Sequence record: MN871445.1 | Direction: 5' to 3' (one strand) | DNA length: 64,000 bases | Part shown: positions 1-12,711 of the stretch, piece by piece | How positions within the stretch are numbered: the first letter of the stretch is position 1 | How the letters are laid out: every line of letters begins with the position of its first letter | Program-made: the position numbers and the translations under genes | Notes under the pieces: model-generated | What the model was told of the DNA's origin: nothing | Database searches by the model: none | Seen by the model: the letters and a program-made list of their open reading frames with translations, nothing else

Positions 1-906
1 CCCAGCGTCATCTTCTATGAAAAATTTGTCTTTTGACCCAATGACTATCGGGTTAATTATTCTTAGATTGCTGACATACGAGCAGTTAATCCCAATCCCA
101 AATGGGTTAGTGTAATTAATATTATTTAACCTTGGACGCTCTAATACGATATTTTCTAGTACGGTGGCTTTTCCACACACGGCGGTATCCGTAACTAAGA
201 ACGAATATTCCAACACCCTGTCCAGGGAATAAATATAATTACTGCCGGATACATCCCTTTTAGCAACTTTACGGAGTTGAGCTTGTTTAACTCCCTGATT
301 ATTTGCGCCCGGGACTAGTTTCTCAGATCTAATTTCGACCCAATCACCTACAGAAAACACGTCGGTAGTCAGTGTTATTTGATATCCCCCAGCCAAGGAG
401 TCCACTGCCAGACTATACCAGGTTGACGGGGCGGCACCGGCTAAGGTAAATCCTTGAACCAATGTAGCTGGAGCGTCAACTTCCCCCAACCCAGTAAAAG
501 TAATATAAGAATTGCTTTTAACGGATAAGGTTCCTGTCGGGGTGATCGCGGCATTAAAATGTATGTTGGTAAGTCCGGAAGCCAGGTATGTATTTATAGT
601 TGTGGATGTAGAAAATAATGAACTGTTGGCCGTCAGCTCTTTAACTAATTTCCATCGTTTTCCAAGGGTCGTAATTAAACAAGTAGTGGAATCATCTTGA
701 GTCTGAGTATCGGTTAAATCCGCTCGATATAAATATTTATTAAATAGCCACACTGCTTCACCATCAGTGGTTGGTTCTCTAGTTCTCAGAGTAGTAATAT
801 CAGCTATTTGTGGTATTTTATTATTTAGCGATATTTGTAAATTGCTACCGTCTGATGTCCCTATCAGACTCGCCCCTTTACCCATTTCACTTGAACCCAG
901 GTTTGA
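1..906 (-). CDS. Silent tailspike cassette A (headless, runs off the left edge; not in ORF track)
   Basis: Manual translation of the - strand from 906 is open to base 1: SNLGSSEMGKGASLIGTSDGSNLQISLNNKIPQIADITTLRTREPTTDGEAVWLFNKYLYRADLTDTQTQDDSTTCLITTLGKRWKLVK...FSVGDWVEIRSE...; in-frame TAA ~45 nt upstream and no start codon before the recombination site. Confidence 0.85.
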
Positions 907-912
907 AAGAAG
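835..912 (-). repeat. 78-bp inverted repeat copy of 6704-6781 (1 mismatch), containing site A
   Basis: Reverse complement CTTCTTTCAAACCTGGGTTCAAGTGAAATGGGTAA(A/C)GGGGCGAGTCTGATAGGGACATCAGACGGTAGCAATTTACAA matches 6704-6781. Confidence 0.95.
886..911 (-). other. Invertase recombination site A (hix/gix-like, 26 bp)
   Basis: Reverse complement TTCTTTCAAACC-TG-GGTTCAAGTGAA, identical to site C; AACC-NN-GGTT core as in hix/gix. Confidence 0.88.
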
Positions 913-965: not shown

Positions 966-3515
966 ATGGCAGCGCTGCCGTCGTTGAAAAAAATATCGGA
1001 TCTGCCGACGTACGTATCCACATCGTCGCCATCCGTGGGAACGCTTTTATACACCGAGTCTGGTGTCGATTATAAACTGCCTGTTACTAAACTGTTGACC
1101 ACCGATAGTCTCAATCCGACACTTAATATCAACTCACCGTTGAACTATACCAGAAATAAAATTACAACCCCCATATCCAAAGCACTACAGGTATTGGATG
1201 TTACTGATGTCAGCATTTGGGAGTATGCTTCATTAATTACCACCAAAGGCAATGTTAATGATTATCAGACTTGGGACTGGACCCCAGCCATCCAGGCTGC
1301 CATTAACTACGTTATCTCATACCAATCCCAAACCGCGGTTAACTCAGGAATGTTTGGCGCTAAGCGTCTTTATATCCCTACCGGCGTATACCCGATTTAT
1401 TCGCAGCTAACCGTTACCAAATATGGTAGTAGTACGGGTAGTTTGGCGACGTCCCTCACTATTGTTGGTGATGGGATGACTTCGTCAATTATTCAACCGA
1501 TGACCGATGGTCAAATCGGTTTGCTGGCGACTAACTGTAAAATAAATGTGGATGGTGTCGGGATGCGTGCCGGGGCAGGTAACCAACAGCACTGGGTTCT
1601 CGGCCTAATCGACACGTGGGTCCCTGTTTTTCATTGCCATTTTAAATGTGTGGGTTCTTCAGGTGCCGCAAAGGGATTGGTACTTAATCTTTGTTTTGAT
1701 AGTACCTTTGAAGATGTGTTTGTTCAAAACATCGCCCCACTTAATTCCGGTGCTAGTGTGTCTTATGGGATTACTATTGAGACTTATACTGGCCCAGCTA
1801 ACGGCGGTACAACTGGCGATGGTAGTGGTGATGATTCCAATCAGTTAGTATTTATTAGGCCTACGGTGGAAACGGCGAACAGTGATAACACCATCATGTT
1901 CAACATCGCAGGTAAAAGCAGTACTTATCCGCATCACGCTATTAACGTCTATGGTGGCCATATTGAAACCCATAACCTTAAAGCGAAATGCTATAACCTG
2001 AAAAATGCTTTCAACGTTACTTTTAATGGTACCGTATTTTCTCAGAACGGTACTTCAGTAGATACGTTCTATCGTTTAGGTTATATTGAAAGTTGCTGGA
2101 ATTTACAATTTGTATCTTGCCGTCAAGTGACATCTAATCGATTGGCGGCTTATGATGCCGTTAACGATACCGTGATGATCAAAGTTACTGGCACTTCGAA
2201 AAACGTTAGATTCCTGAACACGCATTTTATCGGTCCTTATAATGACCTGTCTGCGTATAACCGCGGGATTAGTTGGCTTATCGATTCTACGGAAGCAGAT
2301 AAAACAACCCGCTCTTATATCCTGATTGGGTGTACTGTCGGGGTATATACAAATAAAGACATTACCTCAGAACTTCGGGTCACCGCGACTGACGTTTCCA
2401 GTCGAGAACACATCTTCCGCGTGGATGCATCTGGAAATTTGGTATTAGCCTATTCCAGTGATTCAACCGACACCACAGTACCGACCGATATCTTTGATAT
2501 CTCTAACGGCGGCGTCCTGCACACGAAAGATAACGTTTTGATTGGCTACAAAAACACGGCATCTGCAACGAGAACCCTCGGCTTTTACACGAATGGTGAT
2601 GGCGCTACCGTGATGGGTTCTATGGCGGTAGACAACGCGGGAAGGATGTACTTAACCGCGATGAGTGGGAGTAACCAATGGGTTCTTAACAGTACTGGTT
2701 TACAGCCGACCACTACGGCAACGCTTAACTTGGGTGCCTCAACGGCCACGTTAGCCGCGTCGTACGTTGTAAAAAGAATGTACACGGCAACTGTTGGTGA
2801 TTTTTATGGGTCAGGAAGTCCCGAGGGTGTGGTTAGTGCAGGGATTGGTTCGACATATCGTCGTACTGATGGCACGGTAAACACCTCGTTTTATGTGAAG
2901 GAATCTGGAACAGGTACTACGGGTTGGGTATCCACTGGTTCAGTCAGGCCATATGTTTCTGGCATGTTTGTGAGTCCAGGGAATCTGGTGTTGTCTGGAA
3001 ACTACATATTTAAATATCTGGGTACTGCTGCAGATATTACCGTCGCTCCAGTACCTGGAACACTGTGGAGTATGTTGACTCCGGGGGCTTCAGTAAAAAT
3101 AAAAGCCACGACAACTCAAACCACCACAACAGGAACCAATACAGCCCTAACTTGGGCATCCGCTACCACGGAGTATAATAGTAGCAGTATTTATACGATT
3201 GCTACTGCCGGGATTACCGTTCCAGTGGCCGGGATATATCGCATCGCCGGTAGGGTTGCTTTTGCTTCCAACAACACAGGTACCCGATCGGCCGGGGTAT
3301 TTATTAACGGCTCCTATTACGCGGGGTCTCAGGCTAGATTCGTTGCCAAATCCGGCGGGTATGCAACTACCGCTGATTACAATGATACCATGTCATTGGC
3401 GGCGGGAACAATCATCACGCTATCTGGATTCCAGGATTCTGGTGGGAACTTAGATACTGTTGCAACAGCCCCAGATGTATCTTTCCTGATAGTCAGTTTG
3501 GTAAGCTACGTTTAA
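966..3515 (+). CDS. Tailspike / depolymerase-like receptor-binding protein
   Basis: KKISDLPTY anchor motif, WTPAIQAAI...LYIPTGVY beta-helix cap, GSPEGVVSA...YVKESGTGTTGW motif, C1q-like C-terminal extension. Confidence 0.85.
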   Translation: MAALPSLKKISDLPTYVSTSSPSVGTLLYTESGVDYKLPVTKLLTTDSLNPTLNINSPLNYTRNKITTPISKALQVLDVTDVSIWEYASLITTKGNVNDYQTWDWTPAIQAAINYVISYQSQTAVNSGMFGAKRLYIPTGVYPIYSQLTVTKYGSSTGSLATSLTIVGDGMTSSIIQPMTDGQIGLLATNCKINVDGVGMRAGAGNQQHWVLGLIDTWVPVFHCHFKCVGSSGAAKGLVLNLCFDSTFEDVFVQNIAPLNSGASVSYGITIETYTGPANGGTTGDGSGDDSNQLVFIRPTVETANSDNTIMFNIAGKSSTYPHHAINVYGGHIETHNLKAKCYNLKNAFNVTFNGTVFSQNGTSVDTFYRLGYIESCWNLQFVSCRQVTSNRLAAYDAVNDTVMIKVTGTSKNVRFLNTHFIGPYNDLSAYNRGISWLIDSTEADKTTRSYILIGCTVGVYTNKDITSELRVTATDVSSREHIFRVDASGNLVLAYSSDSTDTTVPTDIFDISNGGVLHTKDNVLIGYKNTASATRTLGFYTNGDGATVMGSMAVDNAGRMYLTAMSGSNQWVLNSTGLQPTTTATLNLGASTATLAASYVVKRMYTATVGDFYGSGSPEGVVSAGIGSTYRRTDGTVNTSFYVKESGTGTTGWVSTGSVRPYVSGMFVSPGNLVLSGNYIFKYLGTAADITVAPVPGTLWSMLTPGASVKIKATTTQTTTTGTNTALTWASATTEYNSSSIYTIATAGITVPVAGIYRIAGRVAFASNNTGTRSAGVFINGSYYAGSQARFVAKSGGYATTADYNDTMSLAAGTIITLSGFQDSGGNLDTVATAPDVSFLIVSLVSYV

Positions 3516-3524
3516 GGAGTTACC

Positions 3525-4043
3525 ATGCCAGCAAGTATGTATGTAGTGGATACGTCCCTACCCTCTGTTGATTTGGTCTACGGGCTTATCAACAACGATA
3601 ACAACACAGTTTACAGTAAATCAACACTCAACCTGGCTACGCCAGAAACAAATACCAATCCCGCGATTGATCGTAATAGTAAAATCCTGGCTTCGAACAT
3701 CAAATACAGTAACAACACGCTGATGCTGTATTACGATAGATTGGATATTGCTGATGTATTGCGCATGGAGTTACCCATCATTTTGTCGAATGTAACTGAA
3801 ACCACGGTAGACCAAATGATGTGGTTTTTTAACTCCACGTACAAGATGGGATTGACCAAAGCTGAAATTAGTGCGTCGGCGGTTGATTTAACCGGCAACA
3901 CCACTACGTGGGCAATTGCGGATAATTCAATGGCGTGGGTGGGAAATCTACCATTAACCATTTTACCATCTGGGTACGGTCTTTTGATTGATGAAACAAA
4001 CAATCAATTGTTGGATGAGGATGGGTCATATTTGATTTTATAA
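3525..4043 (+). CDS. Virion structural/adaptor protein (paralog of 12190)
   Basis: LVYGLINNDN, YYDRLD, SMAWVGNLP and C-terminal LLDEDGSYLIL shared with 12190..12711. Confidence 0.7.
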   Translation: MPASMYVVDTSLPSVDLVYGLINNDNNTVYSKSTLNLATPETNTNPAIDRNSKILASNIKYSNNTLMLYYDRLDIADVLRMELPIILSNVTETTVDQMMWFFNSTYKMGLTKAEISASAVDLTGNTTTWAIADNSMAWVGNLPLTILPSGYGLLIDETNNQLLDEDGSYLIL

Positions 4044-4056
4044 ATAGGGCATAAAA

Positions 4057-4076
4057 GGGAGGGCGAAAGCCCTCCC
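4057..4076. terminator. Hairpin between convergent genes
   Basis: GGGAGGGC-GAAA-GCCCTCCC; TTTTATGCC follows on the - strand. Confidence 0.8.
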
Positions 4077-4109: not shown

Positions 4110-5924
4110 TTAAAATATCCAACATCCCCGAGCAGAATTCCACATAAATTCATATATCCCGACATCGGTGATGGAAACCGAAGTTAATCCACTCCCACCA
4201 GGACCGTAAATGGTTTGTGCATTAGAGGTTTGTATGGTATACGTCGGGGCCGCCAATACTTTTTTAACTCGAATCATAAAGCCACTAGACAAACCACTGG
4301 CGTCTGGCAGCGTAAAAGTACTGGCTGAGGAAGCAACGGAATAATACAAATTACTTAATCCAGTTGTGGGGAAAGTATACCCCGAAGTAATTTCAGTGTA
4401 TGTGATATTGACCCCGGACAAATAATTCAAATATAATTTACCGGTACCCCACGTGAGCATTGGTAATGGATCTGCAGTACCACCACCGCCATAAATGCCA
4501 TTAGGGGTAATATTTAATCTGGCATAATTTTCACTAGTATATTTTACACTGTATCTAACTTGAGTAGTGGATGTTGCGGCTTGTTGAATTGGCTGTATAG
4601 CATCTAAATATCTGACCTCATTAAAGGTATAATTACTCCTATTTGGGTTAGAAGTTATCGCCACTGCCGCACTATCGCCCAATGAACCAGTAGCTACCGA
4701 GGAGGTGAATATGTCTTTTTCACCATCCCAAATGGTAGTCGATCCGGATTGGAACGCCATGCAATAGGCTACTCTAGTATAATTGCTATCGGAGGAATAG
4801 TTAAAATGGCTGTTTGAAGTGACTATCTTCCTAATAGACGCGGTTAATTTAATATTCGCATAGGCGTCGGTAAGCAATGTATCCGCGCTAGACCGCCAAC
4901 CATTGGCAAAAAACGTGGTTGCTAAAATTTCATGTATTTCAGACCCTCCTGGGGTATTAAACAGAATACCATTTTTACCGCAGGAATTTACATGATTACG
5001 CACCATTGAAGTTATTGTCGCTGTAGGACCAAATACGATACCATTTTCCCTACCTTCATAAGACTCAGAATTAATCATTCTGAAACTACCGCAATTGGCG
5101 TAGATATTATCTTCATTACTTCTACCAATCGATGAACTAAATAACATCCAGTCCACGGCGCTTTCCAAATACAGGCATGATTTCCAACACCACAAAACAC
5201 TACTATAATTTAAAAATCCCATGTTTCTTTTAACGCCGGCATATACCCCATAACCAGAAAAATTAGATATTGTCGAATTTATAAATTGTAGGGATGTGGC
5301 GTATTGGCTTGCGGCGGTTAGATAAATACAATTCAATTGTCCCGTCGTGGGGGGTGTTGGACTATATATTGAACCGGTAGTAGTCCAGTCCCCGACTAAT
5401 CGACAGCCATCAAAAGTAGGTGATGCTGCCGCCGACACGGTGAACATATTCCCAACAGTGCCGGGGTAGGGCTTGATATAACTTTCTGAACGCTTACCGG
5501 CCCCTTCAAAATAAACACTACTAGTAATATTAAGATTACCCACTAAATAAGTAGTGTCCTGTTTTAATACTATTTTTCCGGTTCCAGCGGCATTAATTGC
5601 ATTTTGAAAAGGTATGGTATCATCGGATACGCCATCGCACTTCACGCCAAACCAATCCGGATTTATCTTAACTACATTCGAACGTTTCCATCGTTTACCC
5701 CCAACAGTGACTATTACGGTTCCACCATTGTCAGTAGAAGTCGTATCCGCAGCATCATAATAAAATTCACCGCCGCCAACTGGGGCGATAGTAATAGCCC
5801 ATCCCGGGTAATATGCGACAACCTCAATTTTTTGTCCGGAGGTGGTCGGCTCTATCGTCCGTAAGGTTGAAATATCGGAACACCGACCAATATATTTATA
5901 TCCATCACTTGAACCCAGGTTTGA
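4110..5924 (-). CDS. Silent tailspike cassette B (pectate-lyase-like beta-helix), lacking its own N-terminus
   Basis: Begins at site B with SNLGSSDGYKYIG; DNGGTVIVTVGGKRWKR and WFGVKCDGVSDDTIPFQNAINAA motifs; the called TTG start has no RBS. Confidence 0.85.
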   Translation of the reverse strand, partial: SNLGSSDGYKYIGRCSDISTLRTIEPTTSGQKIEVVAYYPGWAITIAPVGGGEFYYDAADTTSTDNGGTVIVTVGGKRWKRSNVVKINPDWFGVKCDGVSDDTIPFQNAINAAGTGKIVLKQDTTYLVGNLNITSSVYFEGAGKRSESYIKPYPGTVGNMFTVSAAASPTFDGCRLVGDWTTTGSIYSPTPPTTGQLNCIYLTAASQYATSLQFINSTISNFSGYGVYAGVKRNMGFLNYSSVLWCWKSCLYLESAVDWMLFSSSIGRSNEDNIYANCGSFRMINSESYEGRENGIVFGPTATITSMVRNHVNSCGKNGILFNTPGGSEIHEILATTFFANGWRSSADTLLTDAYANIKLTASIRKIVTSNSHFNYSSDSNYTRVAYCMAFQSGSTTIWDGEKDIFTSSVATGSLGDSAAVAITSNPNRSNYTFNEVRYLDAIQPIQQAATSTTQVRYSVKYTSENYARLNITPNGIYGGGGTADPLPMLTWGTGKLYLNYLSGVNITYTEITSGYTFPTTGLSNLYYSVASSASTFTLPDASGLSSGFMIRVKKVLAAPTYTIQTSNAQTIYGPGGSGLTSVSITDVGIYEFMWNSARGCWIF

Positions 5925-5929
5925 GGGAA
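5904..5929 (-). other. Invertase recombination site B
   Basis: Reverse complement TTCCCTCAAACC-TG-GGTTCAAGTGAT, 23/26 identical to site C. Confidence 0.88.
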
Positions 5930-5962
5930 TATATGTCGACACCAACCCTCAAGGACATAAAA

Positions 5963-6514
5963 ATGATCTACGGTTATGCCCGAGTTTCTACTCAACATCA
6001 GGATACTACACTACAACTTATTGCGCTTCAGGCAGCTGGCTGCGATGAAATTCGCGAAGAAAAAGCGTCTGGTAGAAGTAGAAACAGGCCCGTATTGAAG
6101 AAACTGCTAACCGATCTTCAATCCGGCGATGAATTAGTATTGTGGAAAATAGACAGGATGGGTAGGAATGTATTACATGCCTTAACCTGGTTGGCTGAGC
6201 TGCAAGATAAGAATGTAAACCTCAGGTCGATCACCGATGCCATCGATATGCGCACTGCTTCTGGCCGTTATAGTTTTCGCAATATTTTGAATGCCGCACA
6301 GTACGAATCGGACGTAAATAGCGAAAGAACCTTGGCTGGACTAGCTGCAGCCAGAGCACAAGGTAGGGTGGGTGGAAGAAAACCAACAATGACCGAACCC
6401 GTTTTGGAGAAAGCACGGGATTTGATAAATGCTGGAAACAATTACCGCGAAGTAGCTGAAGCCATCGGAGTGACCACAAAAACGATATACAAATATTTTC
6501 CAGTCAATTCATAA
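5963..6514 (+). CDS. Serine recombinase, Hin/Gin/Pin DNA-invertase family (183 aa)
   Basis: MIYGYARVST (catalytic Ser9), WKIDRMGR, ERTLAGLAAARAQGRVGGR, C-terminal HTH; AAGGA RBS at 5951; the upstream ORF-track extension is spurious. Confidence 0.95.
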   Translation: MIYGYARVSTQHQDTTLQLIALQAAGCDEIREEKASGRSRNRPVLKKLLTDLQSGDELVLWKIDRMGRNVLHALTWLAELQDKNVNLRSITDAIDMRTASGRYSFRNILNAAQYESDVNSERTLAGLAAARAQGRVGGRKPTMTEPVLEKARDLINAGNNYREVAEAIGVTTKTIYKYFPVNS

Positions 6515-6520
6515 TTTTTG

Positions 6521-6543
6521 ATGAGGCGGCTTGGCCGCCTCAT
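6521..6543 (+). terminator. Hairpin after invertase gene
   Basis: ATGAGGCGGC-TTG-GCCGCCTCAT followed by TTTATGC. Confidence 0.75.
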
Positions 6544-6577
6544 TTTATGCTTATCATTTTTTACAAGAGGGGCTATC
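6542..6577 (+). promoter_or_regulatory. Putative late promoter (TATG) and RBS of the constant tailspike head
   Basis: ATTTTATGC...AGAGGGGCTATCATG; TATG is the phiKZ late-promoter consensus. Confidence 0.45.
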
Positions 6578-8269
6578 ATGGCCAACAGAGCGATTACGAA
6601 GAAAATTAGTGCTTTGCCGACCTACGCACTGAACAACAATAACGGCAATTTACTGTATAGTGAGGGGGGTGCAAATTACCAATTTCCGTTGAGTAATATT
6701 GCCCTTCTTTCAAACCTGGGTTCAAGTGAAATGGGTAACGGGGCGAGTCTGATAGGGACATCAGACGGTAGCAATTTACAACAAATTGCAACAGTAGTAA
6801 GTGACCAACTTATAACCAACCCACAAATTGTTGCTGGCGACAACATGTCCGTTTTAGACCGAATCAAAGTCAAAGGTCAGTATGACATCAACCCGGCACC
6901 TCAGGAACCCCAAGCTGCAGTAGGTATTACTTTTGGAGGGCAGAATAATACCGGAACCATTATGTTAAATAGTCGAGGTGGAATTCAAACCTCGGTCACA
7001 GTAGATGGTTTAACTACAGCGAAAGGATTACACTACCCCTATTCGGAAGGAATGGGTTATTGGCATGGGGCCTATCAAGATACCTTAGTAAAATTCCCTA
7101 TAGACGGGATGGCCGATGATAATATCACATACGGTATATTGTTCTCACATGACGAAAAAACCAACACTCCCAGGATGTTTGCGGTATCTCCACAGTTAAC
7201 AGAACGGGTTAACTATACAGATCCAGGTAGATATCGCTGGGGCGGCGCAAACTTTACAGCAGTCCGTGAATTGGCCCAGCTCGATGCAATTGGTAGAAGT
7301 TCAGCCAATTCATACGACACTTGGTTCACATTGGATAGTTCCAATCCCAATTATATTAATTTCGTATCTTTAACAAATCCAAATTCTGTTACTGGTGGTA
7401 ATTTTTCATGTATTTTCAGTATAGGCAATTATAGTGCTGATAAAGTTACAACCTACATACTGGACGTAACAATTCCATCGGCGATTACCGCATTAACTCA
7501 ATATGACGTTAATAAATACATTAGATTTACGGGGATTGGTGGAGGTTCACTATATCACTATACGGACGCTACTTCTCAAACAAAACCTCGGATTGGTTTT
7601 GTTCAAAACACCACCACCGGGGTACTTGATTTTTATATTCAGGTACCAGCACACGCAACCTATTTTGGTTGTAAATGCTTAAATTCAGGCAATCCTGCTT
7701 TATTTGACTGGAGATGGAGAAATTACACCGGGGGTACGCAATTATCGGGTCTTGCCGGTAGTCCTCCTGCAGGTGTTGTTTGGGGGAACACGGCATATAC
7801 TGGAAGTAATTATCGAACAGTGATGTTAAATGACGGTAGTTTATTTTCAGTACCTGAGGGCTATGCTGTCTTGAGATGTCACATCAATGGCCCAGCCGGG
7901 GTGATTAACGCCGCGCCATTTAAAGCATATGTGTCATCATTTTGTTATGCGACTAATTTCGACAGTAAAATAGCCAATGTGACTTGCGCCATACCTAGTT
8001 TAAACTGGTATATCACCGGAGCAGATCTAGCCACAGATATGCCTTGGCAGATTAGACTCCCCCACGATCTAACTGATGTCGAATCGTACCGATGTGTTGT
8101 GTCTAGTACTGATACAACAAATCACACATTTATGTTTGCTGTCAAAAAAGTGAATACTTCCGGCACGTTAGATTCCAGTAATAACGTAATTTTGACCAAG
8201 TCCCTAAGTACTAGTCCAGTACAAATAAGTAGTGTATCGTGGATTGATGTACTGGTTAAACTACCATAA
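6578..8269 (+). CDS. Currently assembled switchable receptor-binding protein: constant head (aa 1-46) plus cassette C (563 aa)
   Basis: MANRAITKKISALPTY anchor; site C at codons 43-51; GASLIG neck; GAGG RBS before ATG 6578. Confidence 0.85.
   Translation: MANRAITKKISALPTYALNNNNGNLLYSEGGANYQFPLSNIALLSNLGSSEMGNGASLIGTSDGSNLQQIATVVSDQLITNPQIVAGDNMSVLDRIKVKGQYDINPAPQEPQAAVGITFGGQNNTGTIMLNSRGGIQTSVTVDGLTTAKGLHYPYSEGMGYWHGAYQDTLVKFPIDGMADDNITYGILFSHDEKTNTPRMFAVSPQLTERVNYTDPGRYRWGGANFTAVRELAQLDAIGRSSANSYDTWFTLDSSNPNYINFVSLTNPNSVTGGNFSCIFSIGNYSADKVTTYILDVTIPSAITALTQYDVNKYIRFTGIGGGSLYHYTDATSQTKPRIGFVQNTTTGVLDFYIQVPAHATYFGCKCLNSGNPALFDWRWRNYTGGTQLSGLAGSPPAGVVWGNTAYTGSNYRTVMLNDGSLFSVPEGYAVLRCHINGPAGVINAAPFKAYVSSFCYATNFDSKIANVTCAIPSLNWYITGADLATDMPWQIRLPHDLTDVESYRCVVSSTDTTNHTFMFAVKKVNTSGTLDSSNNVILTKSLSTSPVQISSVSWIDVLVKLP
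6705..6730 (+). other. Invertase recombination site C (inverted relative to A and B)
   Basis: TTCTTTCAAACC-TG-GGTTCAAGTGAA, read in frame as S-N-L-G-S-S. Confidence 0.9.
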
Positions 8270-8284: not shown

Positions 8285-10012
8285 ATGAATTATTATTATA
8301 TCGATCCAACCGCCACGTCCTCAGGTAATGGGACAATAACATCACCACATCAATCGTTTACTGCGCTGATCTCCGCAGGTATAATTCATCCATGCACTAT
8401 TTATTTGAAACGAGGGACTACGTTATGTGAAAACGCCAACTTTGGTGTATCTGGTCTGGCCAATACTACTGGGATTATGTCGTATATAGATTGCTACGGT
8501 TCCGGGCCTTTACCAATATGGTTGAATAAAAAATACGTCACCGTGGGAACCGCATTAGATGGATATACTTATAGCGGTATGCATATTACCGCACGAAATA
8601 CACAAAACATCACCATCCAAAATATTGAATTTTATACCAGGAATGACTTGACTGTGGTTGACAATAACCCCTCTTCATTCTTATGGTTGGAATTGCCAGC
8701 GGCCACTACCGAGATATCCGCTAACGTATGGGTTAACCAATGTAAGTTCCATGGTGACCCGATTATCCGTAGTGGAAAACACACGTGGTATGAATCGGTC
8801 ATTAATATAAAAGTCAATGCAAGTGCAACTAATAGGGTTAATTATTTTGGCGTACGGTATTGTGACTTTTATAACGTATCAAGGCCCATCAATATTGTCG
8901 GCAATCATTGGACGGCGGACGATATTACTAGCAATACAACTGGTACTTATTATTCCAGGGGTGTAAAAGTAGAACACTGTTCTATGGTCGGGATTTCAAA
9001 AGGCGGTTGTCAGTTTGCCGGAGTGGAAAGTAAAAACTCCGCATATGTCGTGGATGTTGACCAATCGGTTATGCGCGATATCAGCTATTCCAAATACCGA
9101 TGGGATAACGCGTTGGAAAATTCTGATACGTTGTATGCTGACGCCGGATTCTGGACTTATAGATGTAATCGGGTGATGCTTGAAAATATCCGTGGTGGTG
9201 GGATGTGGCCTTCTGTGACGGACAACGAATTAATTGATTTCGATTACCTCAGCTGGGATTGTGTTGCACGATACATTATCGGGTTCAACAACGCAGCATC
9301 AATATTGTTTATGGGGCATTCTTCTACCGCTTCTCAAGGCGGTTCTAGGGCAGCATATTCAGGTTATTCCTCAACGTATACTCCAGCGCAATGGTTTTAT
9401 GAGCGTAGAAATGGTCAGGGTAATAACATTGTTGAGTTTTGCTATTTCTTCAACGATGGGATTCAAACCGTGCCCGCCCCCTCCACTGGATATGGGGATT
9501 GCGCAAATATCCGTTCCAGGAATATAAATTATTCAAATATTGTTAGGAATTGTGTATTCATTGATACCGTGTCTACTACGATGAAATATTTGGTTTCTAA
9601 TAACAATCTTGCACTTACTGCTGGAGAGCCATACCGTCTATCTATCGAAAACTGCGTTTACTATTCCAGATACAACAATGGAATTGACCTAATAACTCCA
9701 CTCGCAAACACAACCACGTATAGTGCAACAGCGACGAAGATGACTAACATAATTGCTATGTCTGCCGCATGGGCAAGTACTAATTATGCGTCTATTCTTA
9801 GCACTTTAAGTGCTAACTGCACCACTAATAATGCTCGGATAGTCGACCCCCTATTTCGCTTCGTACCAGCCCAACCTCCAGTATCGGTGAAATCGGCATT
9901 AAAGATATCCGTGACCTCCGATTCACCCTGTATTTCTTCCGGCATATCCAGCGGTAATTTGGACATCGTGGGGAAAACGTGCTCCGATATTTTTTGGAGA
10001 TCCTTAAGTTGA
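8285..10012 (+). CDS. Beta-helix polysaccharide lyase/depolymerase-like protein without virion-anchor module
   Basis: YYIDPTATSSGNGTITSP N-terminus, IQNIEF and VRNCVF beta-helix rungs, DPLF near C-terminus. Confidence 0.65.
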   Translation: MNYYYIDPTATSSGNGTITSPHQSFTALISAGIIHPCTIYLKRGTTLCENANFGVSGLANTTGIMSYIDCYGSGPLPIWLNKKYVTVGTALDGYTYSGMHITARNTQNITIQNIEFYTRNDLTVVDNNPSSFLWLELPAATTEISANVWVNQCKFHGDPIIRSGKHTWYESVINIKVNASATNRVNYFGVRYCDFYNVSRPINIVGNHWTADDITSNTTGTYYSRGVKVEHCSMVGISKGGCQFAGVESKNSAYVVDVDQSVMRDISYSKYRWDNALENSDTLYADAGFWTYRCNRVMLENIRGGGMWPSVTDNELIDFDYLSWDCVARYIIGFNNAASILFMGHSSTASQGGSRAAYSGYSSTYTPAQWFYERRNGQGNNIVEFCYFFNDGIQTVPAPSTGYGDCANIRSRNINYSNIVRNCVFIDTVSTTMKYLVSNNNLALTAGEPYRLSIENCVYYSRYNNGIDLITPLANTTTYSATATKMTNIIAMSAAWASTNYASILSTLSANCTTNNARIVDPLFRFVPAQPPVSVKSALKISVTSDSPCISSGISSGNLDIVGKTCSDIFWRSLS

Positions 10013-10051: not shown

Positions 10052-10075
10052 GAGGCAGGGCTTTCGCCCTGCCTC
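10052..10075 (+). terminator. Rho-independent terminator
   Basis: GAGGCAGGGC-TTTC-GCCCTGCCTC plus T-tract. Confidence 0.8.
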
Positions 10076-10132
10076 TTTTATTTCGCCAGTTCCGTAGTCG
10101 GTGAGCTACGTCAAAACCAAAGGATACTGATT

Positions 10133-12166
10133 ATGGTCGCACGTGCAGTCACAAAAAAGATTACTGACTTACCTCTCTACTCACTTAATTTAAATCAAGG
10201 AAATATCCTTTATAGTGAAGGTGGTGTCGCATACCAGTATGCACTAAAAGACATGACCGACTTGATGCTAGCCCCATTATCGGTAAATTCCACTCCGGGT
10301 GCATCCTTAGTAGCCATGAAAAATGGTAGCGTAAATGATGCCATTTTATTTACCACGCCACTAAACTACGGTGGAGTACCCAATGACAATACCGTAGATA
10401 ATGCACCATTTATAGAATCAGCCCTGAATGATACTGGCTATGTTGACTTAGGTGGTCTGACTTGGTATATTAGTCGACCAATCTATATCCCATCTGGAGT
10501 TATTCTTAAAAATGGTAAATTAGTTACCTTAGCCACTAAAGACGGCTCTTTCATGTCGGGAAGTATTTTCGCCCCCGGCAATTATCATCCTGTCTATATT
10601 GACCCAGTCGTTAAAACGGCGTGCACTACCAGTAATGGAAGTTGCACCATTACTGTAGCTAGTACCGTCGGATATGCCATTGGCGACATTATTAGATTGG
10701 CTTCCGTGGTAGGGATAACAAATGGTGTTGATGGATTTATTCCAAAATACATGCAGCTAGCTCGGGTATTGGCTGTTAGTTCAACAAGTTTAACCATTGA
10801 TTCCCCCGTAGAAACTAGTTTATCTCTGGTCATGCATCAAGCTAATTTACCGTTATATCTCGGCAGATTTAATAAATCCCTTTACGTATGTACCGATTCA
10901 ATTATTCGAGATATTGAGATAGATACTTGGGATTACTGGACAGCGGATAGTGCTACTTATAACTGTATTTTTGAAAATATCAGCGGTCACGCAAAGTCGG
11001 TAGTTTATGGTAATACCTTTTGCCGTACGTTGTTCAATAATATCAATATTTCATTTAGAAATAAAGCATGTGAATTAGCTTATGGTTCGCACGATACACT
11101 TTTAAGAAAAATAGGATTCCGACCGGCAGCAGATTGGATATCTACCAATTCTATTGGCGTATCTTTGGCCGAGTCTGGAAGAAACTGTGTTATTGATACT
11201 TTTGATTTCTTTTTAAGTCAAGAAGCAACACTATCTACCATTTTTCGAGTATCATCCCACTCCGGCGTAAAAATACGTAATGGTAAAATACGCCTTTATT
11301 CTAACTCAAACAACATTTTGGCTGTTGAACACTATGGCGGTGACCGTGCAGAATGTATGGACATTTTGTACGAAAATATCGACATTAGCATCAATGGCTC
11401 GGCAGCAGTTATTTGCGATGTCTATAAACAGACGGATGATGCTGTATTAAGCAACGCGGCATTTAAGAATATAAAATATACCGGCGCGGTTCCAAGTGTG
11501 GCATTAATTCGACAGCGAGGCACTGCAGCCAATCCAGTTACTTATGTTTCTGGTACGGTAACCTCTGATGTTGGTGGGAGTTTTGTGGTCTCAAATGCCA
11601 ATACATTTGATTTTAAATTGTACGGGCCAATAACCATCCCATCCCTAGTCTCCACTGCTACTCTGGGTAAGTTGGAATTAATTAACACAAACAGAACCGC
11701 CGCCAAGTCCCAAAATTACGTATCAGAATCAATTACTACGGTAACTGGGACTGACATTACTAATGTAATAAAAGGATTTACTTACCCCGCAGGATCTTTA
11801 AGAACTTCCGATACAATTCAATTTACCTATGCTGGCAGTTTCGGTGGTTTGTTGGGGACAAAGAATGCCGTAATAAGTATGGTTGGTTCTGATGCTACAA
11901 CTTACACCATCCAGATGAATGCCACTGCTGCACAACAGGGGTATTATTCAATAACCGGTGAGGTATCGTTCCCCAGCAGTGTATACTGTTTGATAACTGC
12001 GAATATCGTTAACAGTGGGGTGGTAACGGCATCTAGGATGTTAGTTCCAATAACTGATTTGGCCAGCGGCGCATTCACTATTAATTTTATCGCATACAAA
12101 TCGGTAGCTGGTGATGGCATGTCTGTGCAAAAAATAAAATGGCGGCTATTTGACGTATTATCATAA
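10133..12166 (+). CDS. Tailspike / depolymerase-like protein
   Basis: KKITDLPLY anchor, GASLVA neck, YGGVPNDNTVDNAPFIESAL beta-helix cap. Confidence 0.85.
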   Translation: MVARAVTKKITDLPLYSLNLNQGNILYSEGGVAYQYALKDMTDLMLAPLSVNSTPGASLVAMKNGSVNDAILFTTPLNYGGVPNDNTVDNAPFIESALNDTGYVDLGGLTWYISRPIYIPSGVILKNGKLVTLATKDGSFMSGSIFAPGNYHPVYIDPVVKTACTTSNGSCTITVASTVGYAIGDIIRLASVVGITNGVDGFIPKYMQLARVLAVSSTSLTIDSPVETSLSLVMHQANLPLYLGRFNKSLYVCTDSIIRDIEIDTWDYWTADSATYNCIFENISGHAKSVVYGNTFCRTLFNNINISFRNKACELAYGSHDTLLRKIGFRPAADWISTNSIGVSLAESGRNCVIDTFDFFLSQEATLSTIFRVSSHSGVKIRNGKIRLYSNSNNILAVEHYGGDRAECMDILYENIDISINGSAAVICDVYKQTDDAVLSNAAFKNIKYTGAVPSVALIRQRGTAANPVTYVSGTVTSDVGGSFVVSNANTFDFKLYGPITIPSLVSTATLGKLELINTNRTAAKSQNYVSESITTVTGTDITNVIKGFTYPAGSLRTSDTIQFTYAGSFGGLLGTKNAVISMVGSDATTYTIQMNATAAQQGYYSITGEVSFPSSVYCLITANIVNSGVVTASRMLVPITDLASGAFTINFIAYKSVAGDGMSVQKIKWRLFDVLS

Positions 12167-12189: not shown

Positions 12190-12711
12190 ATGTCCTCAAA
12201 CTTCTATATTGTCGACTTATCTTTACCGGCCACCGAACTCGTTTATGGTCTTATCAACAATGATAACGATACGAATTACGGGCCAGACAAAGTAACCCTC
12301 GGTGAAGTATCTGCCGTCCCAAGCGAAACTCCACGCAACAGTACGTTGACCCTTTCGAGGGTCAACTATCCACTCATGACTCTCGATATTTTCTATGACC
12401 GGCTAACCTTTGCCGAAGTCATTGATTCTGATTACCCTATCGTTATAAGTCGTGAGGCTGGAGATACTACCACCTGGGATTTAATCAATGGGGTTAATGA
12501 AGGGCTGGGGTTTGGGTTGGTGCCGGCTGATATCGTTAACGCTGTTCTCGATCTGGGTGACCCCAACGTTATTCTTGAGGCAGGTGAAAAGTCCTATGCG
12601 TGGCTTGGGGAAATACCTGTATTGTATTTGGAACCCGGAGAAATCGCCTTCCAGATAAATGACGGTGATTTGCTTTATCTTGATGACGATACCATCATGG
12701 TGGGAAATTAA
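12190..12711 (+). CDS. Virion structural/adaptor protein (paralog of 3525)
   Basis: LVYGLINNDN, FYDRL, SYAWLGEIP, acidic/hydrophobic C-terminus. Confidence 0.7.
   Translation: MSSNFYIVDLSLPATELVYGLINNDNDTNYGPDKVTLGEVSAVPSETPRNSTLTLSRVNYPLMTLDIFYDRLTFAEVIDSDYPIVISREAGDTTTWDLINGVNEGLGFGLVPADIVNAVLDLGDPNVILEAGEKSYAWLGEIPVLYLEPGEIAFQINDGDLLYLDDDTIMVGN

Follow-up and report, generated by a model that had tools for sequence, protein, structure and literature searches.

A silent K1-lyase-type tailspike body in Serratia phage KpHz_2 is probably part of a three-way inversion switch of the Gin family

For the tailspike locus of Serratia phage KpHz_2, the silent capsule-depolymerase body at the left edge of the DNA analysed (cassette A) is probably one of three alternative bodies, A, B and C, which one tailspike would exchange by means of a three-way inversion switch of the Gin family. 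In the present state of the genome, only body C is connected to head 1, the N-terminal anchor, and to the expression element that precedes this anchor, and cassette A would probably be made only when the invertase flips this promoter and anchor onto it.

The sequence was taken from MN871445.1, a 270,429-bp record of KpHz_2 with K. pneumoniae as host. The window, meaning the whole stretch of 64,000 nt that was analysed, begins at record base 186,001; L001 denotes the sequence reaching 20 kb upstream, window position w being L001 position w + 20,000, and the scans for sites and invertases also covered the rest of the KpHz_2 genome. The record names a Serratia phage yet lists K. pneumoniae as host, gives sea water as its source, is flagged UNVERIFIED_ORG and carries no annotation. 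No tRNA gene was found in the 64-kb window with ARAGORN, and most of the region from 12 to 60 kb of the window is occupied by small ORFs running on one strand.

The part of cassette A within the window occupies positions 1-906 on the minus strand. The sequence-only reading had described this strand as open and tailspike-like, and the translation of 1-960 agreed with it, since the frame is open from 948 to base 1 and contains all the quoted motifs (GASLIG, DDSTT...GKRWK and FSVGDWVEIRS). It had also reported a stop upstream and no start before the recombination site. An in-frame stop does lie immediately upstream, and no in-frame ATG, GTG or TTG was found on the minus strand between this stop and site A, but an in-frame ATG is present directly after the site (885-883), at a position where gene C has a Met too. 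No GAGG-type ribosome-binding sequence precedes this ATG, while the neighbouring genes have one. After the upstream flank was added and the ORF completed, 667 codons were counted from the site-encoded Ser to the stop (record 184903-186906, L001 18903-20906), with no early stop or frameshift. The stop codon (L001 18903-18905) is followed by a G+C-rich terminator hairpin (L001 18861-18898), and the alignment to K1 lyases runs to the last residues. Because the frame is intact up to its stop and terminator, a pseudogene was ruled out. The description as a cryptic cassette holds, in the form of an intact, start-less body lying inverted behind a recombination site. The statement that ORF calling had missed it was an artefact of the window edge: cassette A is absent from the window's ORF list because its frame runs past the edge, and the public gene call for the full record gives a 660-aa gene from the ATG at 885, with K1-lyase Rider and C-terminal domains.

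The product of cassette A belongs to the K1-lyase family. It was matched to two K1-specific capsule depolymerases of solved structure, PDB 9k4a (E 1.7e-119, residues 59-665) and PDB 7w1c (E 4e-105, residues 92-667, up to the last residue of the chain), as well as to Pfam K1-lyase_Rider (PF24149, 5.9e-22) and to a tail fibre PHROG (3e-151). PF24146 and PF27114 were precomputed on the called gene, and the domain set of the family, consisting of the Rider domain, the beta-helix and the K1-lyase C-terminal domain, is present. The catalytic residues of the K1 lyase are Tyr311, His373 and Arg397 (PMC8822698). Residue numbers in the 7w1c chain exceed the native ones by 20; with this offset, each of the three is matched in the alignment by the identical residue of cassette A. 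Arg472, which belongs to the second carbohydrate site of the K1 lyase, is not conserved. The identity to characterised K1 enzymes is 38-42% over about 600 residues. The closest relatives, at 67-71% identity, are all uncharacterised, and comprise tailspikes of ~50-kb Klebsiella siphophages (67%) and one 683-aa protein on an uncharacterised contig (71%). Cassette A is predicted to act on K1 capsule.

Each of these relatives has its own, different N-terminus. Compared with gene C, cassette A matches over residues 1-24 only (23/24), and the remainder is unrelated. A C-like neck of 24 residues on a foreign-type body makes cassette A a chimera of the site and neck of C and a foreign lyase body. This also supports the earlier suggestion that A and C share a neck by duplication, the rest being unrelated to C and the body 71% identical to a foreign tailspike. 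The simplest reading would be the capture of a foreign depolymerase body, which would have been placed behind duplicates of the site and of the first 24 neck residues of C and would end in the standard terminator module of the locus. In G+C content cassette A is no different from its neighbours, and its composition thus gives no hint of a recent import.

Cassette A and gene C are connected by a 78-bp inverted repeat. The left arm (835-912, minus strand) is made up of site A and a further 52 nt that code for the neck, and the right arm lies at 6704-6781 on the plus strand; the two are 99% complementary (77/78), with a lone mismatch at 877 versus 6739. The repeat and its extension well beyond the 26-bp site had been noted before and were confirmed here. 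Within the first 12 kb, the second-longest inverted repeat measures only 29 nt at 72%, and a 25-nt part of the 78-nt repeat is found again at 5905-5929. Three crossover sites were located, namely site A (886-911, minus strand), site B (5904-5929, minus strand) and site C within the expressed gene (6705-6730, plus strand). The site is a 26-bp imperfect dyad (12-2-12) with, in the coding orientation of site A, the core dinucleotide TG; in the alignment of the sites, TTC, AAACCT and GTTCAAGTGA are invariant, and TTC and AAACC of the left half-site are invariant even in the non-coding flank beside the silent cassettes. An 18-nt core occurs three times in the window with zero mismatches (887-904, minus; 5905-5922, minus; 6712-6729, plus). 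With three mismatches allowed, about 0.16 matches would be expected by chance, and none of 100 shuffles gave three. The length and identity of the repeat, together with three perfect cores beyond chance, indicate that the observation is real. Sites A and B share one orientation and site C has the opposite one. The A-C homology begins exactly at the outer edge of the site and extends 52 nt past it; the B-C homology is confined to the 25-26-bp site, and homology longer than the site is unique to the A-C pair.

A serine DNA invertase of the Gin/Pin family (193 aa) is encoded between cassette B and head 1 of gene C (5933-6514, plus strand, with an alternative start at 5963). It was assigned by Pfam Resolvase (4.2e-36), HTH_7 (1.4e-5) and the PHROG 'DNA invertase' (5e-65). 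It matches the Mu Gin structures 4m6f/3uj3 over residues 1-181 (E 2e-44) with the catalytic Ser motif YxRVST aligned, at 154 bits against at most 72 bits for gamma-delta/Tn3 resolvases (best E 5e-19). The whole-genome scan found a single copy of this gene in KpHz_2. Among the matches listed, the phage genes that come nearest (62% identity) belong to temperate lambdoid phages and are annotated as Pin-like, and the records longer than 200 kb with a match at E 1e-30 are KpHz_2 and its relative KpGz_1 only. In addition, a sigma-70-like match (10/12) was observed on the plus strand at 5867-5896, in the neck of cassette B just upstream of site B and the invertase start; if it is real, expression of the invertase could be orientation-dependent. 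The GAGGG ahead of the invertase ATG is part of the left half of site B.

The tailspike gene now assembled from head 1 and body C (563 aa; 6578-8269, plus strand) was matched to a tail protein PHROG (8.7e-41). Head 1 is the 45-residue N-terminal anchor ahead of site C (6578-6712, plus strand). Upstream of it, a conserved element is formed by the strong terminator hairpin that follows the invertase gene (6520-6544, plus strand) and the next ~33 nt. No recognisable sigma-70 promoter was found between the invertase terminator and the start of head 1, and sigma-70 matches in the scan were no commoner than in shuffles. A motif upstream of the heads and of the 849-aa tail protein gene at 966 was considered as a general late promoter and rejected, because it has just three relevant occurrences, which overlap terminator tails, and the sequence alone does not identify a promoter. 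The element ahead of the heads is presumed to act as the promoter.

Further sites and cassettes, which had been thought worth seeking, were found both in the window (site B with cassette B) and upstream of it (a second trio). Cassette B is a second silent tailspike body (4110-5924, minus strand), with about 603 codons after its site and stops directly upstream; gene callers list it as 610 aa. It matches CBA120 TSP2 (PDB 5w6p, E 7e-18) and depolymerases, and its Pfam Beta_helix match is weak and below cut-off.

According to the proposed mechanism, the invertase encoded beside the head would carry out recombination between the 26-bp sites, which are placed in frame where head and body meet. Inversion between sites B and C would flip about 0.8 kb, comprising the invertase gene, the upstream element and the head, and would join the head to B. 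Inversion between sites A and C would flip about 5.8 kb, comprising the 849-aa and 172-aa genes, cassette B, the invertase gene and the head, and would join the head to A, after which a further small flip would give access to B. The product of head 1 and cassette A would be a virion-anchored lyase of the K1-capsule type.

Two genes inside the large A-C invertible segment would also be carried along. The 849-aa tail protein gene (966-3515, plus strand; PHROG tail protein 3.4e-216) shares the N-terminal anchor motif of the cluster, and the adjoining gene encodes a 172-aa DUF7941 virion structural protein (3525-4043, plus strand; Pfam DUF7941 1.8e-18). They have their own leader and terminator and would travel as one unit in an A-C inversion. 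Their terminator is a two-way terminator-like hairpin (4057-4076) common to the 172-aa gene and cassette B. On the other side of the switch, a 575-aa gene without anchor motif and without Pfam or PDB match (8285-10012, plus strand) begins 16 nt past the stop of C and ahead of the next terminator, so it is probably co-expressed with body C and switched alongside it.

The hairpin at 4057-4076 is a member of a repeated 3'-end module. This terminator-like module of about 38 nt was observed at window positions 4057-4076 and 10054-10077 and at L001 8034-8071, 12746-12769 and 18861-18898; it ends every cassette or operon in the tailspike cluster, and several copies then share a TTTTATGC tail. Five paralogous DUF7941 genes (about 172-219 aa) were observed, each located 3' of a tailspike gene (window 3525-4043 and 12190-12711; L001 12790-13380, 15167-15688 and 15700-16359), and their products might be an adaptor or assembly factor. 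In addition, at least seven tailspike genes open with a common motif of about 45 residues (..KK.s.LP.Y....G.LLY.E.G..Y..P..), with starts at window positions 966, 6578, 10133 and 12714 and at L001 10698 (minus strand), 13387 and 16373. Such a motif points to a docking peptide that these tailspikes would share in a branched fibre apparatus.

The second three-site switch (L001 6496-12485, record 172496-178485) lies 10 kb upstream of the first, the two trios of sites being 14 kb apart. Its perfect cores are at L001 6503 (plus), 10384 (minus) and 10772 (plus) and have CC at the centre, versus GG in the first trio. The 373-bp segment between the cores at 10384 and 10772 carries head 2, which has 105 residues with a Pfam Tail_spike_N domain, is now fused to a 770-codon body and is preceded by a 31-nt element 97% identical to that of head 1. 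Two silent bodies (508 and 570 codons) face the remaining sites, and no recombinase gene was found near this switch. Genome-wide, exactly six perfect 18-nt cores were found, making up the two trios, and the next-best matches have three mismatches. Sites of one trio have the same core and occur in opposed orientations. All six sites lead in the same frame into open bodies of 508-770 codons; the four silent bodies are headless with stops just upstream, and the two expressed bodies carry heads. Differing core dinucleotides should block recombination between sites, as is established for this enzyme family, and by analogy the two trios of KpHz_2 presumably do not recombine with each other.

To place the locus among its relatives, a comparison was made with the near-identical phage KpGz_1 (MN871444.1), whose invertase gene, head 1 and body C are 98-99% identical to those of KpHz_2. 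Each switch of KpGz_1 has only two sites, and its invertase is 99.5% identical and intact, as is that of KpHz_2. Cassette A is not present in KpGz_1, where a terminator abuts the leader of the 849-gene homologue at that exact spot; KpHz_2 has there cassette A and its own terminator module in the opposite orientation. The silent B body (L002 23079-24600) and the expressed left-hand body of the second switch (L002 9982-12193) of KpGz_1 are unrelated to those of KpHz_2, with flanks 84-99% identical. The body differences between the two phages are bounded by the 5' site and the terminator-like module. Since similarity resumes at the site and at the terminator, the depolymerase bodies have been swapped as units from site to terminator, which indicates cassette replacement between the two phages. 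Both phages are in the same state: head 1 is joined to C, and head 2 to the left body.

In Eowyn (LR881104), no invertase match was found at E 1e-30 among the matches listed, and no reverse-strand silent cassettes were observed. Heads 1 and 2 are present, each fixed to a single body, with head 1 on a different body. Site-like sequences are located at the head/body junctions (L015 11932, minus, and 21630, plus), matching the core at 18/18 and 16/18 positions, and an annotated transposase gene lies at the end of the tailspike cluster (L015 28355-29449). Eowyn thus keeps the core without the enzyme, which weakens the argument from site conservation alone; the core may persist there because the neck motif that it encodes is conserved, or else as a relic. 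The same core was also found in prophage tail-fibre genes and in an IMG/VR contig (L004) of classic G-segment layout: the segment encloses two convergent bodies, the constant part lies outside it, and a neighbouring gene encodes an invertase of 48% identity.

An inverted isomer, with head 1 on A or B, was found neither in the two genomes nor in the public collections, where only the parental orientation was seen. The exact-protein look-up of the invertase returned the source record only, and among the homologues of cassette A found by search, which bear other heads, none carries head 1. Scans of viral and metagenome contigs for invertase relatives yielded no natural isomer, and the site-pattern scans gave, besides one classic G-type locus, nothing but prophage tail-fibre genes that are unrelated. 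The phi80 pinL region, with a 62% identical invertase, was considered as a parallel and set aside as not informative, since it is a relic without matching sites. That inversion happens is inferred from the anatomy of the locus.

The main alternative is that the switch is an inactive relic, with the sites kept as neck-coding sequence and A and B being free-standing, headless and possibly soluble depolymerases made from internal starts. The gene calls of 660 aa for A, from its in-frame ATG, and of 610 aa for B would fit such products, as would the perfect core in Eowyn without an invertase and the single orientation shared by KpHz_2 and KpGz_1. However, the ATG of cassette A differs from the starts of its neighbours in having no GAGG-type ribosome-binding sequence and corresponds to an internal Met in gene C, and headless products would be without the N-terminal anchor common to the virion tailspikes of the locus. 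The conservation of the left half-sites in non-coding flank, the intact invertase of both phages and the precise swapping of silent bodies at site and terminator also argue against a relic, which is considered unlikely.

The long A-C homology may, as had been suggested earlier, also allow exchange independent of the recombinase. In a stronger form of this idea, the exchange would proceed mainly by general homologous recombination over the 78-bp inverted repeat, not by the invertase. It would then resemble the Campylobacter fetus sap locus, where promoter inversion is RecA-dependent. The 77/78 identity running 52 nt past the site in the A-C pair only is in line with such an exchange, but a length of 78 bp is short for general recombination to be efficient, the outer edge of the site is exactly where the homology begins, and the segment encodes an invertase of the right family. 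Cassette B shares only the 25-26-bp site with C, and site B with a B body is nevertheless retained and intact in both phages, and homologous exchange is judged improbable as the main route. Least probable is a repeat-mediated mis-join that placed cassette A here as an assembly artefact. Cassette A is found in one assembly only, and that record carries the UNVERIFIED_ORG flag and a name at odds with its stated host; its far side, however, consists of the locus's own terminator module and unique sequence continuous with conserved upstream genes, the upstream switch of the same genome has the same three-site design, and the G+C content of the cassette fits its surroundings.

Returning to the Gin-family switch as the preferred reading, a wider proposal can be put forward tentatively, with somewhat less confidence than would make it the expected outcome. 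One borrowed Pin/Gin-like invertase may run two three-way switches that would be kept apart by their different cores and whose mobile piece is the promoter and virion anchor, and the site-to-terminator unit may serve as a silent capture slot for foreign bodies such as the K1-lyase-type cassette A. In a jumbo phage whose type is regarded as virulent, this would allow at most nine tailspike combinations.

Infection by Klebsiella phages is limited mainly by capsule type, and each depolymerase usually fits one capsule type. If the switch reading is true, part of the enzyme set of the phage is silent and is brought into use by DNA inversion, so that annotation alone would misjudge the capsule types that a lysate can attack, and lysates would be mixtures. 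Receptor switching driven by an invertase, known in the temperate phages Mu and P1, would then extend to a very large phage whose nearest named genus is described as lytic, in a layout where the head flips.

Literature searches gave no description of this switch system or of KpHz_2, and the locus was compared with known systems as follows. The closest are the G segment of Mu with Gin, the C segment of P1 with Cin and the P segment of e14 with Pin, in which a small serine invertase changes host range by inverting tail-fibre genes; the KpHz_2 enzyme is closest to Gin. As in these systems, the 26-bp dyad sites of KpHz_2 lie in frame at the junction of the constant and variable parts of a receptor-binding protein. 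The features of Gin, Hin, Cin and Pin systems found in KpHz_2 include the catalytic and HTH domains, an enzyme closer to invertases than to resolvases, paired inverted dyad sites and in-frame open fusions. Invertases of this family also depend on a Fis-bound recombinational enhancer in cis. The constant part and the promoter of the classic systems stay in place, and the invertible segment carries two variable parts in convergent orientation, whereas in KpHz_2 the head, the upstream element and the invertase gene would flip and the bodies diverge outside the flipping piece. The bodies of KpHz_2 are capsule-depolymerase tailspikes of about 600 aa, in contrast to the fibre tips with chaperones of the classic systems. 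The classic carriers are temperate, whereas KpHz_2 has a genome of ~270 kb and the named genus closest to it, Eowynvirus, has been described as apparently obligately lytic (PMC13757433); KpHz_2 itself is without genus assignment.

An R64-type shufflon was rejected as a model, as it needs a tyrosine recombinase (Rci) and the KpHz_2 enzyme is a serine recombinase. In the Min multiple-inversion system of plasmid p15B, one Gin-family invertase acts on more than two crossover sites and shuffles several tail-fibre segments. KpHz_2 likewise has more than two sites for one Gin-family invertase, and its three or more sites with one recombinase place it with multiple-inversion systems by anatomy; unlike Min, it has two separate trios with different cores, and whole bodies would be exchanged in place of mosaic segments. 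In the Salmonella Hin system, the invertase gene and an outward-reading expression signal lie together in the H segment, an invertible segment of about 1 kb. The small flipping segment of KpHz_2 similarly holds the invertase gene and an expression signal. Hin is a transcription switch only, whereas the flip in KpHz_2 would make an in-frame protein fusion and involves a third, distant site.

As for the cargo, the body of cassette A resembles the K1 capsule lyases NTUH-K2044-K1-1 ORF34 (PDB 7w1c), PhiK64-1 S2-4 (K1-specific) and PDB 9k4a in its alignment over about 600 residues, its Rider and C-terminal domains and its catalytic Tyr/His/Arg, and differs from them in having no N-terminal anchor of its own and in not keeping Arg472. 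The clustering of many tailspike genes with a common anchor motif is shared with hyperbranched jumbo phages of the PhiK64-1 / RaK2 type, which show all their depolymerases at once (PMC9700779), whereas KpHz_2 also holds silent alternatives behind recombination sites. This kind of host-range switch is already known, and the phage and the layout are unusual. The differences from what is known lie in the moving part, the depolymerase cargo, the two trios with different cores under one enzyme and the carrier.
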